Sequence record: NC_031126.1
Length of the DNA stretch: 64,000 bases
Strand: one strand, 5' to 3'
The translations under genes and the position numbers were made by a program. The notes under the pieces are model-generated. The model had not been told where the DNA came from. It saw only the letters and a list, made by a program, of their open reading frames with translations, and did not search any database. Positions 11,527 to 39,876 of the stretch are shown piece after piece. Position 1 is the stretch's first letter. The number at the start of each line of letters is the position of its first letter.

Positions 11527-12123
11527 ATGATTTATAACGTGTTGGCCATCCACAGCTGGGGAATTAAACTGGGTGTGGTCGGCTACCTCACGGATGGCGA
11601 AGTGTTTTTGGAGGCGGTTGAAAAAACCGTTGCGAAGTTCCCAAAGATGCGCGTCGATTTACCGGTAGGGGAGCTGGAGAGTGATGTAATTTATAGCGCG
11701 TTACGTACAGCGGCGATGGTGTATCTGGATAACTATCAAACCGTATTGCCTCGCGTTCAGCTAAGTCGTCTGAAAACGTTCCTGGATTCGCTAAGTGATG
11801 AATACCGTCGTTGGAAATTCGATGCCGGTATGGAGTGTACCCCCAACGATACGGTGATGGAGGAATTGACCCCGTTGATTCAACTACACCGTTCTGTGAG
11901 CAGTGATAATTTCAGCGTGGCAAATACCATTCTGGAATATTCCATTGAAGCCGTCTCGCAGTTCTTTGCGAAGCAGATTGTGGAAGAGTTCGCTCACGTT
12001 GTTGCGGCGTACCGTCTCATGCACAAAGGGAACATTGAGCGGTTAGTCGTCACGCTCGATTTCCCACAGTGTCAATTCAACATCATGGATATGAGACTAC
12101 ACATTCACGTCGCGGAGGAGTAA
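11527..12123 (+). CDS. hypothetical early protein (198 aa)
   Basis: AAGGAG SD. Confidence 0.8.
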   Translation: MIYNVLAIHSWGIKLGVVGYLTDGEVFLEAVEKTVAKFPKMRVDLPVGELESDVIYSALRTAAMVYLDNYQTVLPRVQLSRLKTFLDSLSDEYRRWKFDAGMECTPNDTVMEELTPLIQLHRSVSSDNFSVANTILEYSIEAVSQFFAKQIVEEFAHVVAAYRLMHKGNIERLVVTLDFPQCQFNIMDMRLHIHVAEE

Positions 12124-12530
12124 TGTACGACATTAAGCAGTTAGAAGCCGGTTCGGTGGTGAACATCACGTATGACACCCCGATTAAGATGCCCGAGCAA
12201 CGTGTTGTTGTCTTGGGCACCTGCGGTTACGAAATGGCCAAAAGCTTTGAAGATGTCAATGCAACCCAGAAGAACATCTATTCCAGTCTGGTCGCCCAGC
12301 CGGAAGACAATACAGCGAAATACCTGTATCTGATGTTCAAAGGGGCTAACGGTAAAATCCGTGTAGCAGCAGATGCGTGGATTCGTGACGTTAGCGTCAT
12401 TAAGAATCTTACCGTACGCTTTACCGTTACGGTGGATAACCGTGACGAGATTGATGAAATTACCAAAGCCTTGGCTATCCGTGGGCTAAACGATGTCAAG
12501 TATGAAATCGTGGATAACACGGCAGGATAA
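12123..12530 (+). CDS. hypothetical protein (135 aa)
   Basis: GGAGGAG SD, TAATG coupling at 12121-25. Confidence 0.8.
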   Translation: MYDIKQLEAGSVVNITYDTPIKMPEQRVVVLGTCGYEMAKSFEDVNATQKNIYSSLVAQPEDNTAKYLYLMFKGANGKIRVAADAWIRDVSVIKNLTVRFTVTVDNRDEIDEITKALAIRGLNDVKYEIVDNTAG

Positions 12531-34829: not shown

Positions 34830-36530
34830 ATGTACGAGATACACATCACGCATACCTCAATGGGGGTGCGTGTGGAGGTGCCAGTCCGACAAATTGAGAT
34901 AGCTCTCAAGACTTGGGCTGAGCAGAACCTTCACGCTCCCAAAATGGGGAAAGACCACGGTAGAATAACCGTGGAGCAGGGTGATGGATATTACGCGTAC
35001 TTGCCTGGTACGAGAACATTCATCTTCCACAAGACGTTCCTGGAACAGATTCTGTCTGTTATCAAGAACACCGTTGTATCGCACCGCTTAGACGTCAAGC
35101 TTATTGAACACGACGTCACCAAGAACCGCAAGCAACCCTACGGTTGTGCGTTTCCCAACCACGGGTTCGACTTAGTGGTCACCGATCCCGATTCTCGCTT
35201 CTATTACCAAAACGACGTAGTGGAAGCTGCACTTGACCCTTTATGGGCACAGGTGATATTTGCCATCCAAACCGGCCGTGGTAAGACGAAGTCTCTCCAG
35301 AAGGTCATGGTAAAGATGGGAGTACGAACGGCGCTTATAATGCGTCCTACGTACAAGGACAAATGGATCTTCGACTGTTGTGATGATCCGACCGGCTTGC
35401 TGGTCGAAAAAGAACATGTTCTTATCTGTCAAGGGGTGCAGTCGATATACGATGCCTACGAGATGGGCCAGAACGGCGAGTTAGACGCGAAGGATATCCG
35501 CATCATTATTATCCCAACCGTCACGCTACAATTGTTCCTCAAAGAGTACATGAACACCTCGGCGACTAACGCCATTAACCTTGACGACTTCTACGACACC
35601 TTGGGTGTCGGCCTTGTGGGGTATGACGAAGTGCATGAACACTTCCTCCTGGTTTACCTCAGTGGAGTCATGTTGAACCCGCCGAAGACTGTGGAGATGT
35701 CAGCCACGCTTGAACCGGGTGCAGCGAAGGTGTTTATCCGCGAACGCTATAAGGAACGCTTCCCAATCATTAACCGATTGAGTATTCCCTATATCCCCGT
35801 CGTGGATGTGCGTGGTTTGTACTACACCATCGAAGACAAGAAGTTAGCATGGTGGGCGACGAAGATGACGCCTTACAACCATAAAGTCTTCGAAGGGAAA
35901 TTGATGCGGGAAGGCTATCATATTTCGTACTGCGAAATGTGGTATAACCTGATGGAGAAGACCTATCTGGCGAACTACGAGCCTGGTCAGAAGATTATCA
36001 TTCTGTTCGCTACTGTGGACATGTGTGAATTCTACACCAACTACGTTCGTGAGAAGCTGTCAACTCATCCGGTGTTCTGCGATTTGATGGTGGCGAAGTA
36101 TAACGGTGGCGATTCGTATGACGATTTCATCATGGCAGAGATTGGGGTATCTACCCCGAACAAAGCCGGGACGGCAATCGACAAACCGGGCACTGTCCAC
36201 ATGTACGTGACCACACCAATTGATGACCAGCAGCTCAACGAGCAGATTGCCGGTCGTCCACGTCCTGTTATCTGGGACATGAACCCGAAAGTGTGGTTCG
36301 GTCATTGCATGAACATCCCGAAACATGGCTCTTATCTGAACTCCCGCATGAACTCTTTAAAAGGGAAAGTGCTGTCGTTCATGGTAGCAACCTCACCGTA
36401 TGTTGTAAGGAAAAGTTATGATAACGCCTCCACTTCCAGCAGAACCCGAAGCCCCTTACGTCGGCTTGAGTTTACAAAAGTTTCTCGAAAACGTTCTAAG
36501 GGCGTATCCAGGGGTAGAAGACGTCGCTAA
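34830..36530 (+). CDS. superfamily 2 helicase (phiKZ gp75-like)
   Basis: Walker A IQTGRGKT, Walker B YDEVH, motif III MSAT, motif VI QIAGRPR. Confidence 0.88.
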   Translation: MYEIHITHTSMGVRVEVPVRQIEIALKTWAEQNLHAPKMGKDHGRITVEQGDGYYAYLPGTRTFIFHKTFLEQILSVIKNTVVSHRLDVKLIEHDVTKNRKQPYGCAFPNHGFDLVVTDPDSRFYYQNDVVEAALDPLWAQVIFAIQTGRGKTKSLQKVMVKMGVRTALIMRPTYKDKWIFDCCDDPTGLLVEKEHVLICQGVQSIYDAYEMGQNGELDAKDIRIIIIPTVTLQLFLKEYMNTSATNAINLDDFYDTLGVGLVGYDEVHEHFLLVYLSGVMLNPPKTVEMSATLEPGAAKVFIRERYKERFPIINRLSIPYIPVVDVRGLYYTIEDKKLAWWATKMTPYNHKVFEGKLMREGYHISYCEMWYNLMEKTYLANYEPGQKIIILFATVDMCEFYTNYVREKLSTHPVFCDLMVAKYNGGDSYDDFIMAEIGVSTPNKAGTAIDKPGTVHMYVTTPIDDQQLNEQIAGRPRPVIWDMNPKVWFGHCMNIPKHGSYLNSRMNSLKGKVLSFMVATSPYVVRKSYDNASTSSRTRSPLRRLEFTKVSRKRSKGVSRGRRRR

Positions 36531-36801
36531 GGCACTGTGTCAGGACCCGAAAATCAATCGGGCCTTTCACTATTACATGGTGACTGAACACTATGCTGGA
36601 ATGTTTATCGAACAACGCGGGTTACGCTACCATGTAACCCGCACGTCGAATATACGCGGTACCGCCGCGTACGAACTGTACACCTACACTCTCTGGACGG
36701 ACAACCCAGCCGGGAGTGTAGACCAAAACCCGAAAATGGCCTATGCTCTCTTCTCTGAGAAATGGCATGATTGGGTGACTGTTCCACATAACGTATCTTA
36801 A
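36418..36801 (+). CDS. hypothetical protein (127 aa)
   Basis: AAGGA SD before ATG 36418; overlaps the helicase 3' end by 113 nt. Confidence 0.6.
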   Translation: MITPPLPAEPEAPYVGLSLQKFLENVLRAYPGVEDVAKALCQDPKINRAFHYYMVTEHYAGMFIEQRGLRYHVTRTSNIRGTAAYELYTYTLWTDNPAGSVDQNPKMAYALFSEKWHDWVTVPHNVS

Positions 36802-36856: not shown

Positions 36857-37465
36857 ATGTCACGTCGTAAGAAACCCGCTGGTTACAATCCTAAGCAAGC
36901 TGCTCGTGATGGCATCACCCGCAACATGCGCGATATCAACAACGTGGAACAAATCTTCCGCGGTGAATCGTTAATCCTGTCTGACCGACTGGATACCGAA
37001 GGCAAAGCTCTGGAGTTGATTGAGTCCGCTGAGCTGCGCGATTACCTGACCGGGCACTTCAACCGTACGAAGAGTGGCTTCGTCGGTTTGATGGCGGAGT
37101 TCATCCAAAAACTCGCTGCTATTCGTACTCCAGCCGACGCCCTTGCGTGTGACTGGATGACTAAACTCTCGACGAATAAATGGGATGTCGTTAAAGACGC
37201 CTATGCCCTGGCCGATCTGGAACTGACTGCTGCATCGGCAGACGCTATCTTCCTGGGCCAGGAATCAACCGCTGCTGCTATCGAGTTGTTCTCTCAATAC
37301 GCTTCCCGCACCAGTGCCATGCACCGGGCAATGCGTATGGGCCTGACTATCCCTCAGGTTATTGAGTTCATGGAAGCAGTGGATGAAAACACTGCACCTG
37401 CTGCCGTTGAAAGCGTAGCAGAAGAAGCCGTAGCTGAGACTAAAGAGGAAGCTGCAAATGTCTGA
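36857..37465 (+). CDS. hypothetical protein (202 aa)
   Basis: AAGGA SD; basic N-terminus, acidic C-terminus. Confidence 0.8.
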   Translation: MSRRKKPAGYNPKQAARDGITRNMRDINNVEQIFRGESLILSDRLDTEGKALELIESAELRDYLTGHFNRTKSGFVGLMAEFIQKLAAIRTPADALACDWMTKLSTNKWDVVKDAYALADLELTAASADAIFLGQESTAAAIELFSQYASRTSAMHRAMRMGLTIPQVIEFMEAVDENTAPAAVESVAEEAVAETKEEAANV

Positions 37466-39437
37466 ACAGTTTGATGCCCGCCCAGGAATGGTGCGACGCG
37501 ATGTTCCGGAGGCTGTGGATACGAAACCCACCTTCCAACCATTGGCTGAAGAGATGATGGCATCCCTGTCAAAAGGGGATGCTATCATGCAGATGCTCCA
37601 CCTCAATCCCACTTTTTCTTTTGCCGAGGCAAGCGGCGTTTACGATGACTGGGCTGCCAAACAGCAGGCACCGGTTGTTGAGCCGAAGAAAGAAGAAGTG
37701 CAGGTTGCTGCACCGACGCCAGCGGCGGTTGCACCGGTAACACAACCCATTGCTGAACCGGTCACCCCTGTGGCTCCGGTACAAGCTCCCGTGAAGCAAG
37801 AGATTCCGGAAACTATCCGTACTCTGCATACCCACGCCGAGCCGGTACAGGCCGCCACCACTACTGCGCCGGTAGCGCCTATTGCACCTGCGCCACTGCC
37901 GGAGTCTAACGATGCTGCCCAACCCATCGTCGCTGAGTCAATCCCTCACAAGGTTGATTTCGGGTCTCAGCCTAATCGCGAAGAAATTGGCGAGATGGGT
38001 AAAGAAGATCCACATCGCATTTACACACAGACCGATGAACTGGTCGGTACCTTCTTGCCGTTGGCCGCAGAAGAAGACGCCGCACGTTTCTTCTCTTCAA
38101 TCCGCCGTAACGCCAAAGGCCAACCGATGTTCGCCTCCGAAGCCGAAGCGAACAAGTATCAGGTTCTCTCCACGGTTCTGGAGCTTACACCACCAGTAAA
38201 CGCGAACGGTCGTGCTGTCTTTGACACTGCTCTGGAACGTAGCGATACGTCTTGGACGCAGGGGATGACTCTCCCGACCGGTAAAATGGCTGGCCCTGCG
38301 CAAGACCGTGGTGCTGATGCCAAGGGTGCCCGCGCTGCCTTGCGCCGTCGTCGTCAGTCAGGCTCACCGATTTCTCTGTGGTTGCCGTCTACCGGTATTT
38401 ACGTAGGGTTCCGTGCACCACTCGAACGCGAGATGTGTGACTTCGACATTCGACTGGCTACCGAAACTGCAACGCTCGGTATGCAGACCTATGGCCTGCT
38501 GCTGTCGTCTATGTCTGGCGTGTACCTGCGTCACATGGTAGAACATTCGCTGAATTTTGCGATTGAGACCACCTATGACTGCCAGGGTAATGACATCAAG
38601 ACCGCACTGATCGATATCGTTGACCTCGATGATTACTGGTTGTTGATTCTTGGCCCGATTATGGCTAAGTTCCCAACTGGGATTCCGTGGAAGTTGGTGT
38701 GTGCGAAAGACGACTGCGGTCATGAGCGTGACGTTAAGTTGAACCTGGCGCGTTGTATCCGTATGGCCGATGGATTGTTCACCGACCTGCATCGTGCAAT
38801 GAACCAACGTCAACGTGGTAAGACGAACCAGATTATCGGTCCGGACGATTACCTGGCGTATCGCAAAGAGCTGCCGCATAACCCGGCCAGCGTGTTCAAA
38901 AACCCAGAAGCGGGTCTCACCATCAACTTCGGTCGTTCTACTGTCGGGGAATACCTCGATAGCACCGATCGTTGGTTGGAAGAGATTAACCGTGCTGCCA
39001 CCGATGCGTTGTCTTCCAACGCCAGCGACTACGAACGCACCAACTACATCAAGTTGACTGCGGAAGTGCGTCGTCTGACCCGTCATGCCCACCACGTTAA
39101 GTCCATTATCGTGGAAGAAGAAGTGAAGGGTGAAATCGTCGAGACTGAGGAAACGGACCCACTGAAAATCGTGGAGATTCTGGAAGACATGTCCTCTGAC
39201 CGTGTATACGTTCTGGCGTTTGAAAATGCGCTGGCACGTTACAACGATCTGTCTCGTATGGCGGTGCTCGGCTACATGGGTCACGCTTGCCCTGCTTGCC
39301 AGACGAAAGAAGGCGAAGAAGACGGTCCGTTCCGTGGTATTGTTACCATTTCACCGGACAGGGTTTTTTTCGCGCTATCTCGTGTGGTGTCCGAGATACA
39401 GAAAGTCTTTTTACAACAGTTCGGAAATATTGGCTAG
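37458..39437 (+). CDS. T4 gp26-like baseplate-hub / tail-assembly chaperone protein with Pro/Ala-rich linker
   Basis: DYWLLILG...WKLVCAKDDCGHERDVKLNL and C-terminal CPACQ...DRVFF match the recalled gp26-type pattern; PAVA-rich N-region. Confidence 0.7.
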   Translation: MSEQFDARPGMVRRDVPEAVDTKPTFQPLAEEMMASLSKGDAIMQMLHLNPTFSFAEASGVYDDWAAKQQAPVVEPKKEEVQVAAPTPAAVAPVTQPIAEPVTPVAPVQAPVKQEIPETIRTLHTHAEPVQAATTTAPVAPIAPAPLPESNDAAQPIVAESIPHKVDFGSQPNREEIGEMGKEDPHRIYTQTDELVGTFLPLAAEEDAARFFSSIRRNAKGQPMFASEAEANKYQVLSTVLELTPPVNANGRAVFDTALERSDTSWTQGMTLPTGKMAGPAQDRGADAKGARAALRRRRQSGSPISLWLPSTGIYVGFRAPLEREMCDFDIRLATETATLGMQTYGLLLSSMSGVYLRHMVEHSLNFAIETTYDCQGNDIKTALIDIVDLDDYWLLILGPIMAKFPTGIPWKLVCAKDDCGHERDVKLNLARCIRMADGLFTDLHRAMNQRQRGKTNQIIGPDDYLAYRKELPHNPASVFKNPEAGLTINFGRSTVGEYLDSTDRWLEEINRAATDALSSNASDYERTNYIKLTAEVRRLTRHAHHVKSIIVEEEVKGEIVETEETDPLKIVEILEDMSSDRVYVLAFENALARYNDLSRMAVLGYMGHACPACQTKEGEEDGPFRGIVTISPDRVFFALSRVVSEIQKVFLQQFGNIG

Positions 39438-39844
39438 ATGCCGATGATATTCCTTCCGGCGCTATCATTAATGCACTGAAGCTCGACACCTCCTCGCTGT
39501 TCAAACAGCGCAGTAGCCGACCCATCACGTATCAGGAGGCGCACGACGAATTACTCTCCACCTACGACGACGTTATGGGGATGGACACTGGTGAGAACAA
39601 CATCAGTTTGTCCGACTTCGAAAACCCATTGATGGGTTCGTTGTACGAGGTGTGGATGACGACGTATGTGCGTGAACGTATCGGGGATATATTCCAACTC
39701 AGCTTTGATGAGTTCCTCGACCGTCCTCGATGGGAGATTATGAAGTTGCTGGAAGTGGCAAAGCGCCGCTTGGCGGAGCTGAACCGCGTGCAGGGGAATA
39801 TCGTTTCCGACGATTTGGAAAAGCAGTTAAAGTTAAACCTGTAA
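39365..39844 (+). CDS. -1-frame ORF, gp51 / tail-chaperone GT-like; probable frameshift extension of 37458-39437
   Basis: Open from 39287, with no ATG/GTG/TTG between 39287 and 39575. C-terminal IGDIFQLSFDEFLDRPRWEIMKLL motif. Slippery T TTT TTC at 39365-71. Confidence 0.7.
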   Translation, partial: FFRAISCGVRDTESLFTTVRKYWLDADDIPSGAIINALKLDTSSLFKQRSSRPITYQEAHDELLSTYDDVMGMDTGENNISLSDFENPLMGSLYEVWMTTYVRERIGDIFQLSFDEFLDRPRWEIMKLLEVAKRRLAELNRVQGNIVSDDLEKQLKLNL

Positions 39845-39876
39845 AAGAAGGGGCTTCGGCCCCTTTCTTTTTTTTT
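39845..39876 (+). terminator. intrinsic terminator
   Basis: AAGGGGC-TTCG-GCCCCTT plus long T-run. Confidence 0.85.

Follow-up and report, generated by a model that had tools for sequence, protein, structure and literature searches.

The window analysed here is a 64,000-nucleotide (nt) stretch of sequence record NC_031126.1, and the locus of interest is a 2.4-kb region of it that matches Erwinia phage vB_EamM_ChrisDB (KX397366) at 100% identity, window coordinates and genome coordinates being the same. ChrisDB is placed by the NCBI taxonomy in the family Chimalliviridae, genus Machinavirus. The locus comprises a long open reading frame (ORF), ORF1, corresponding to ChrisDB gp55, and a small downstream gene, gp56, both annotated in GenBank as hypothetical proteins. 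Near its 3' end ORF1 carries a run of seven T residues followed by C over a conserved Phe-Phe pair, and from this run a second coding region continues in the -1 frame past the ORF1 stop codon to the end of gp56 (Table 1). In a published core-genome table of the family, the orthologues Goslar gp081, PhiKZ gp077 and RAY gp267 are entered under core gene cg18, also listed as "hypothetical protein". Sequence comparison across the family leads us to propose that cg18 (phiKZ gp77 orthologue; ChrisDB gp55) is subject to programmed -1 ribosomal frameshifting at the T run, a reading to which we assign a probability of roughly 0.7. That a recoding event takes place at the run, by slippage of either the ribosome or RNA polymerase, can be considered close to certain.

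The codons of ORF1 over the site read AGG GTT TTT TTC GCG, with the heptamer T_TTT_TTC in phase as a preliminary description of this stretch, made from its letters alone, had stated. From 39287 onwards the -1 frame contains no stop codon until 39842-39844, giving 157 codons from the run, also in line with that description. The same source had reported this frame to be devoid of start codons between 39287 and the ATG at 39575 from which gp56 is annotated. This is correct between the T run and the ATG, where no ATG, GTG or TTG occurs, but in-frame TTG codons are found at both 39287 and 39296, upstream of the run. The claim that the ATG at 39575 has no clear Shine-Dalgarno sequence was borne out, with a duplex energy of +0.4 kcal/mol compared to -4.5 to -11.4 kcal/mol at neighbouring ATG-started genes, and none of the near-cognate start codons of the ChrisDB -1 frame is preceded by such a sequence either (the yardstick was the duplex with a 9-nt anti-Shine-Dalgarno string of 16S rRNA). 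A -1 slip at the heptamer would append the 157 residues of the -1 frame to the first 638 residues of ORF1, so that the previously calculated lengths of 795 amino acids (aa) for the trans-frame product and 659 aa for the zero-frame product are correct.

A T7 run alone is a common feature of this DNA: the window has 25 matches, where shuffles would lead one to expect 11.8. Runs of at least seven T are present at about twice their expected frequency in the window, and several lie just 3' of hairpins and are probably marks of terminators. Among in-phase X_XXY_YYZ heptamers in ORFs of at least 150 aa in the window, 2 of 39 are followed by a -1 frame that extends at least 50 codons beyond the zero-frame stop. 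The other of these two, TTTCCCA at 12060 in the ORF at 11527-12123, precedes a 154-codon -1 frame (window 11527-12530) with a GTG of its own at 12069, and looks like an ordinary overlapping gene pair. The decisive evidence that the arrangement in cg18 exceeds chance is its conservation across the Chimalliviridae, as seen when related loci are compared.

This comparison covered 47 non-identical loci, drawn from GenBank, IMG/VR and metagenomes and representing at least 12 named genera and nine remote metagenomic lineages; the IMG/VR loci were gathered with two sub-alignments of ORF1 orthologues as queries. A run of five to eight T is found over the same, nearly invariant Phe-Phe in 47/47 loci, 27-135 nt before the ORF1 stop codon. 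Most lineages feature T7 or T8, and T5 or T6 only is found in PhiPA3, D6, pVa-21, PA1C and two IMG/VR phages. The -1 frame is open for 149-183 codons past the run in all 47 loci, one of which ends at a contig edge, and the pieces it encodes align as homologs across the family. A stop codon closes the +1 frame after a median of 14 codons (mostly fewer than 60, with one outlier of 140). The tetramer T_TTY is in phase in all of 30 lineages, and the canonical X_XXY_YYZ heptamer is present in 26. The claim of the preliminary description that -1 recoding joins ORF1 to a start-less ORF is thus strongly supported by the comparison, and appears to apply far more generally than had been put forward, namely to the family as a whole.

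The choice of codons at the site is informative beyond the presence of the run. TTT serves as the P-site Phe codon in 27 of 28 lineages, compared to a mean TTT fraction of 0.33 elsewhere in ORF1 (P ~2e-14), and the base preceding it is T in 24 of 28, compared to a third-position T frequency of 0.27 (P ~1e-10); these values are Poisson-binomial tails and are indicative only, as the lineages are related and not phylogenetically independent. Elsewhere in ORF1, TTT is used for 0/14 Phe codons in Xoo-sp14 and 0/18 in RSL2. Such a bias indicates that the T run is selected at the nucleotide level, beyond the requirement of the protein for Phe-Phe. A profile of ORF1 orthologues matched 1188 clusters (50% identity) in 1.84 billion representatives. 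Among the best 150 of these 1188 clusters (279-705 aa), nearly all full-length matches stop at the Phe-Phe, with the protein end 10-45 residues later, and no in-frame fusion of ORF1 with the -1 ORF is present. On a narrower scale, about 120 nt around the shift site (window 39323-39445) are almost invariant in four phages that are otherwise ~9-18% divergent. Downstream of the run this near-invariance is due to dual coding, and over the ~40 nt upstream of the run it holds within the genus only, with synonymous sites differing between genera. A conserved upstream nucleotide element was considered and discarded, as synonymous sites upstream of the run vary except in two invariant codons.

Several observations indicate that the -1 frame is coding from the run onwards. 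In tblastn searches with the 157-residue -1 piece, matches start at its first residue, i.e. at the base after the run, in nearly all relatives; in both SPN3US and ChrisDB, this residue precedes the last sense codon of ORF1 by 64 nt. When nine Machinavirus-type loci are compared, the 138 nt that separate the ORF1 stop codon from the first ATG of ChrisDB display 9, 5 and 38 variable columns (of 46 each) at -1-frame codon positions 1, 2 and 3, respectively, as against 50, 26 and 76 (of 89 each) in the part annotated as gp56. From this periodicity, the start-less stretch is coding and more constrained than the annotated part. The first ~68 codons of the ChrisDB -1 piece lack a start codon and yet are its best-conserved part. 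The first canonical start of the -1 frame is located 7-84 codons past the run at non-homologous positions (84 in the phiKZ-type KTN4, 68 in ChrisDB), which explains why the length of the small gene varies from 72 to 183 aa according to gene callers. Upstream of the run, no -1-frame start is present in 41/47 loci, and one is present in the remaining six, including ChrisDB. In the two-frame overlap, 10 of 64 columns are variable among the nine Machinavirus-type loci. Lineages in which this overlap is longest (114-135 nt) show conservation of both frames inside it, suggesting that -1 translation begins before the ORF1 stop codon. The zero-frame tail is also conserved in SPN3US-like phages, and with both tail and -1 frame conserved, both products appear to be under selection. 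The signal, its phase and the start-less -1 coding region are thus present and conserved throughout.

Table 1. Features of the cg18 locus of phage ChrisDB (window coordinates).
Feature	Coordinates	Strand	Description
ORF1 (ChrisDB gp55)	37458..39437	+	659-aa zero-frame product; GenBank "hypothetical protein"
gp56 as annotated in GenBank	39575..39844	+	89 aa, "hypothetical protein"; equals the final 89 codons of the -1 piece
T7 run followed by C	39364..39371	+	T run at 39364-39370; heptamer T_TTT_TTC at 39365-39371 over the conserved Phe-Phe; proposed tandem tRNA-Phe slip site
-1-frame coding piece	39371..39844	+	157 codons and stop; proposed C-terminal extension of the trans-frame product
Two-frame overlap, dual-coding	39371..39437	+	peptides of both frames conserved
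7-bp hairpin	39376..39398	+	TATCTCG (39376-82), 9-nt loop, CGAGATA (39392-98); possible local stimulator, role not backed by conservation
Intrinsic terminator	39847..39876	+	GC-rich stem and T run; closes the ORF1/-1 ORF transcription unit
gp54 (phiKZ gp78 orthologue)	36857..37465	+	upstream neighbour; 8-nt overlap with the start of ORF1

A perfect 7-bp hairpin begins 4 nt past the heptamer in ChrisDB, as previously described. Its 5-bp core is retained in six to seven of eight SPN3US-like lineages, being broken in Kwan and weakened in Caitlin. No compensatory change was detected in its pairs (covariation term 0, consensus energy -4.2 kcal/mol); dual coding leaves little variation in this region, and the covariation test is therefore of low power. 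In none of 31 lineages does the downstream 45-nt window exceed its shuffles in folding stability (z from -1.6 to +1.3). It had been suggested that orthologous loci be aligned for the T run, the reading phase and the hairpin: the run, its phase and the -1 ORF are indeed family-wide, but the hairpin is limited to a 5-bp core in SPN3US-like phages and is absent from phiKZ-like ones. The hairpin is possibly a local stimulator, a role which its conservation does not support.

According to the proposed mechanism, most ribosomes would pass the T run and stop 22 codons further on, yielding the 659-aa protein with its short conserved tail. A fraction of them, while tRNA-Phe occupies both the P and the A site on T_TTT_TTC, would slip back by one base and read the 157 codons of the -1 frame to give a predicted product of ~795 aa (~88 kDa), whose C-terminal helical domain would correspond to what databases list, in truncated form, as gp56. 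The two proteins would share residues 1-638, and their ratio would be set by slippage efficiency. Tandem or single tRNA-Phe slippage by -1 could account for all lineages, among them the ones whose run is T5 or T6. As a guess by analogy with other two-isoform phage proteins, and as the weakest step of the proposal, the protein may have an assembly or scaffolding role to which the long form adds an interaction domain. That the ribosome slips rather than RNA polymerase is something we infer, as we do the efficiency of the event and its function.

Some features of the locus weigh against this reading. The heptamer is non-canonical in 4/30 lineages, which have T5 or T6 runs; the spacer between heptamer and hairpin is merely 4 nt in ChrisDB; and no conserved downstream stimulatory structure was found in the lineages compared, with phiKZ-like phages lacking a counterpart of the hairpin. 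In some lineages, such as Machina, a start codon 7-35 codons past the run could also allow a free small protein to be made, and the trans-frame protein itself is a product predicted from sequence comparison. Moreover, a homopolymer run would also suit transcriptional slippage, in which an RNA polymerase, probably the multisubunit enzyme of the phage, stutters on the T run and generates mRNAs of altered length that encode the same long protein. The run is purely homopolymeric, with 7-8 T, in most lineages and is itself under apparent selection, a conserved downstream RNA structure was not found, and these genes are transcribed by unusual phage polymerases with subunits encoded next door. Bacterial-type polymerases, however, usually need about nine A or T residues for efficient slippage, and the T5 or T6 runs of PhiPA3, D6, pVa-21, PA1C and the two IMG/VR phages are short for that. 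The invariable phase of T_TTY also speaks for the ribosome, with low weight as the conserved Phe-Phe forces this phase. Overall, transcriptional slippage appears to be an unlikely explanation, if the most serious of the alternatives. A bolder variant, in which recoding is ancient and universal in the Chimalliviridae (~900-1200 clusters end just past the Phe-Phe) and is achieved at least in part by stuttering of the phage multisubunit RNA polymerase in the phage nucleus, is a rather speculative proposition that we would not favour.

That the two ORFs are simply separate genes, as annotated in GenBank, seems improbable. The downstream ORF would then be translated from the ATG at 39575, from a non-canonical codon or from an upstream start such as TTG 39287 or 39296, and the run would be kept for Phe-Phe only. 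An ATG 17-37 codons past the run in some lineages would fit such a scheme, as would the -1-frame start upstream of the run in 6/47 loci (ChrisDB among them) and the annotation of RAY gp266 from a start of this kind (locus L016, 2313-2861; 136-nt overlap with gp267). But annotated starts are non-homologous and yield products of 72-183 aa, they are located downstream of the most strongly conserved portion of the ORF, which shows the variation pattern of coding sequence, phiKZ and KTN4 have no canonical start for 84 codons, and neither the ATG nor the near-cognate codons of ChrisDB have a Shine-Dalgarno sequence. The 41/47 loci without an upstream start, and a preference for TTT and a preceding T far in excess of the need for Phe-Phe, also disagree with two independent genes. 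Least probable of all, and refuted in practice, is a sequencing or assembly error in the homopolymer, or a decaying gene, so that the locus would really be one continuous ORF or a pseudogene. Homopolymers are error-prone, and the record of SEGD1, which belongs to the SPN3US species, annotates a single 795-aa coding sequence (locus L011, 596-2983). Nevertheless, the same two-frame layout recurs in the 47 non-identical loci, which stem from independent isolates, platforms and metagenomes, purifying selection acts on both frames, and the best 150 of the 1188 clusters hold zero fusions. The SEGD1 sequence was rejected as a natural fusion: its run is as long as that of SPN3US, and the fusion arises from one single-base indel at another place in the gene. 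This indel sits in a patch with 10 of the 21 mismatches of the gene, and was treated as an assembly flaw. Programmed -1 ribosomal frameshifting thus remains our preferred reading.

The genes surrounding the locus in ChrisDB encode a helicase, hypothetical proteins, RNA polymerase beta-type subunits and a B-family DNA polymerase; as remarked earlier, no tape-measure gene adjoins the locus. The order gp79-gp78-gp77-small ORF (phiKZ numbering) is kept across the Chimalliviridae relatives examined. The terminator after the -1 ORF is strong, with an 8-11 bp GC-rich stem and a T9 run, and no promoter-like or terminator-like signal of note was found between ORF1 and the -1 ORF, suggesting that both are carried on one mRNA. 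The GGGGCTTCGGCCCC stem of this terminator (39847-39876) is kept in the four closest relatives. Some peculiarities of annotation are apparent nearby and in related genomes. The TTG start annotated for gp53 (window 36466-36801) lies inside the helicase gene without a Shine-Dalgarno sequence (-0.2 kcal/mol), and is doubtful since relatives annotate a shorter ORF of ~225 nt. In PhiEaH1 (locus L043, 312-1400) the ORF1 orthologue is unannotated and lies at the genome end. Two remote metagenomic relatives feature a Macro-domain gene after the small ORF (loci L051, 3423-3878, and L055, 3365-3820).

ORF1 retrieved 187 phage records by tblastn, including those of phiKZ-type phages, PhiPA3, 201phi2-1 and RAY. 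Its orthologues are phiKZ gp77, 201phi2-1 gp136, PhiPA3 gp074, SPN3US gp39 and RAY gp267, and phiKZ gp77 is named in record notes. The conserved core (residues ~260-640) contains four invariant Cys and the invariant Phe-Phe; across 62 diverse members, two Gly, four Cys and the second Phe are the residues that never vary. Residues ~70-200 (window 37660-38060) form a Pro/Ala/Val-rich, low-complexity stretch that is predicted to be disordered, with a predicted local distance difference test score (pLDDT) of ~30. SPN3US-like phages have this stretch in highly variable form and phiKZ-like orthologues lack it, and its presence or absence accounts for the range of orthologue lengths (480-730 aa). Neither Pfam nor NCBIfam yielded a named family for ORF1, the -1 piece, 11 orthologues or the family profiles, and both ORFs fall in PHROGs families of "unknown function". 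Searches of the PDB gave no match by sequence or profile for either ORF or the family profiles, and nothing significant by fold. AlphaFold models are of low confidence (mean pLDDT 55 for ORF1 and 58 for the all-helical -1 piece), and fold matches consequently carry little weight. In Foldseek searches of viral models, ORF1 matched chimallivirus orthologues followed by a 687-aa "baseplate protein" of an uncultured myovirus (E-value 1e-11).

A resemblance of ORF1 to T4 gp26 had been suggested from the sequence. Of this, a faint trace was recovered: a Foldseek match to A0A6J5KPC0, "Baseplate hub assembly protein, T4-like" (E-value 1.9e-4, template modelling (TM) scores 0.19/0.37, 16% identity, with a query model of pLDDT 55), a PF12322 match in 1/62 remote orthologues (E-value 0.027, amid noise-level matches), and one GenBank record that labels an orthologue "T4 gp26 like". 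On the other hand, ORF1, the -1 ORF and 11 orthologues gave no match to PF12322 at E-values up to 1. Comparison with the T4 gp26/gp51 family thus sets an annotator label, two Foldseek matches and one sub-threshold profile match against the lack of a significant Pfam match for ORF1, 11 orthologues and 61/62 remote ones, low TM-scores and a low-confidence model; a remote link of ORF1 to this family is possible. The parallel suggestion that the extension resembles gp51/E'-type tails found no backing in Pfam, NCBIfam or the PDB, and a structure search with the -1 piece retrieved small uncharacterised chimallivirus proteins only. No chaperone family was matched by either ORF in Pfam, PHROG functions, NCBIfam, the PDB or BFVD, and neither matches any solved virion structure. 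The orthologue gp81 is not listed in the paper on the Goslar virion structure. Its absence from that list, together with the absence of a solved chain matching the family profiles, suggests that the ORF1 protein is probably not a major virion component.

Recoding with similar outcomes is well documented. Gene 10 of phage T7 encodes the major capsid protein 10A and the minor frameshift-extended form 10B. As proposed for cg18, slippage by -1 that involves tRNA-Phe, a few codons ahead of the zero-frame stop, yields a minor C-terminally extended form beside a major short form at a ratio set by efficiency. Unlike in T7, the protein of cg18 belongs to another family, its extension of ~157 residues is a conserved domain in its own right, its short form keeps a conserved 21-residue tail, and the site is conserved over a whole virus family. 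The tail chaperones G/GT of lambda and E/E' of P2 share with cg18 a common N-terminal part, a conserved -1 slip at a heptamer (for cg18, a predicted one) and a start-less downstream ORF. However, cg18 does not lie between tail tube and tape-measure genes, either in ChrisDB or in its relatives, no sequence or fold similarity to these chaperones was found, and ORF1 is much larger (480-730 aa). In dnaX of E. coli (tau/gamma) and in the transposase genes orfA-orfB of IS3/IS1-type elements, recoding at a homopolymer-like heptamer provides a fixed ratio of isoforms from one gene. The shifted product of dnaX is the shorter one and known stimulators flank its site, whereas that of cg18 would be longer and no conserved stimulator was found.

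The recoding proposed here is thus of a well-known type, a -1 frameshift leading to a C-terminally extended isoform, at a site that is apparently unreported. No published report of frameshifting or slippage at this locus was found, including in the core-genome paper and in a 2025 review of nucleus-forming phages, a result that is provisional as most subscription papers lay outside the search. Several literature matches to "gp77" proved to reflect the numbering of other phages and were set aside. What makes the case noteworthy is that a core gene of a much-studied phage family would be mis-annotated everywhere. If the proposal is correct, the annotation of this gene would need to be amended in every sequenced nucleus-forming jumbo phage, and the small "hypothetical protein" of 72-183 aa, with a start that differs in almost every record, would represent the C-terminal domain of a trans-frame isoform rather than an independent gene. 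A second conserved protein species, unmentioned in the published descriptions searched, would thereby be added to a core proteome of about 70 genes. This prediction is testable in existing proteomic, ribosome-profiling and RNA-seq data sets for phiKZ, SPN3US and their relatives. If polymerase stuttering were to be responsible instead, the ratio of isoforms of an essential core protein would be set at transcription and not at translation, and the mode of recoding would be tied to the unusual polymerases of the family; the outcome would again be a new two-isoform core protein, the long form of which carries the conserved helical domain. The cg18 locus therefore offers a natural case for comparing ribosomal with polymerase-driven recoding, a distinction that matters because these phages separate transcription, in the phage nucleus, from translation.

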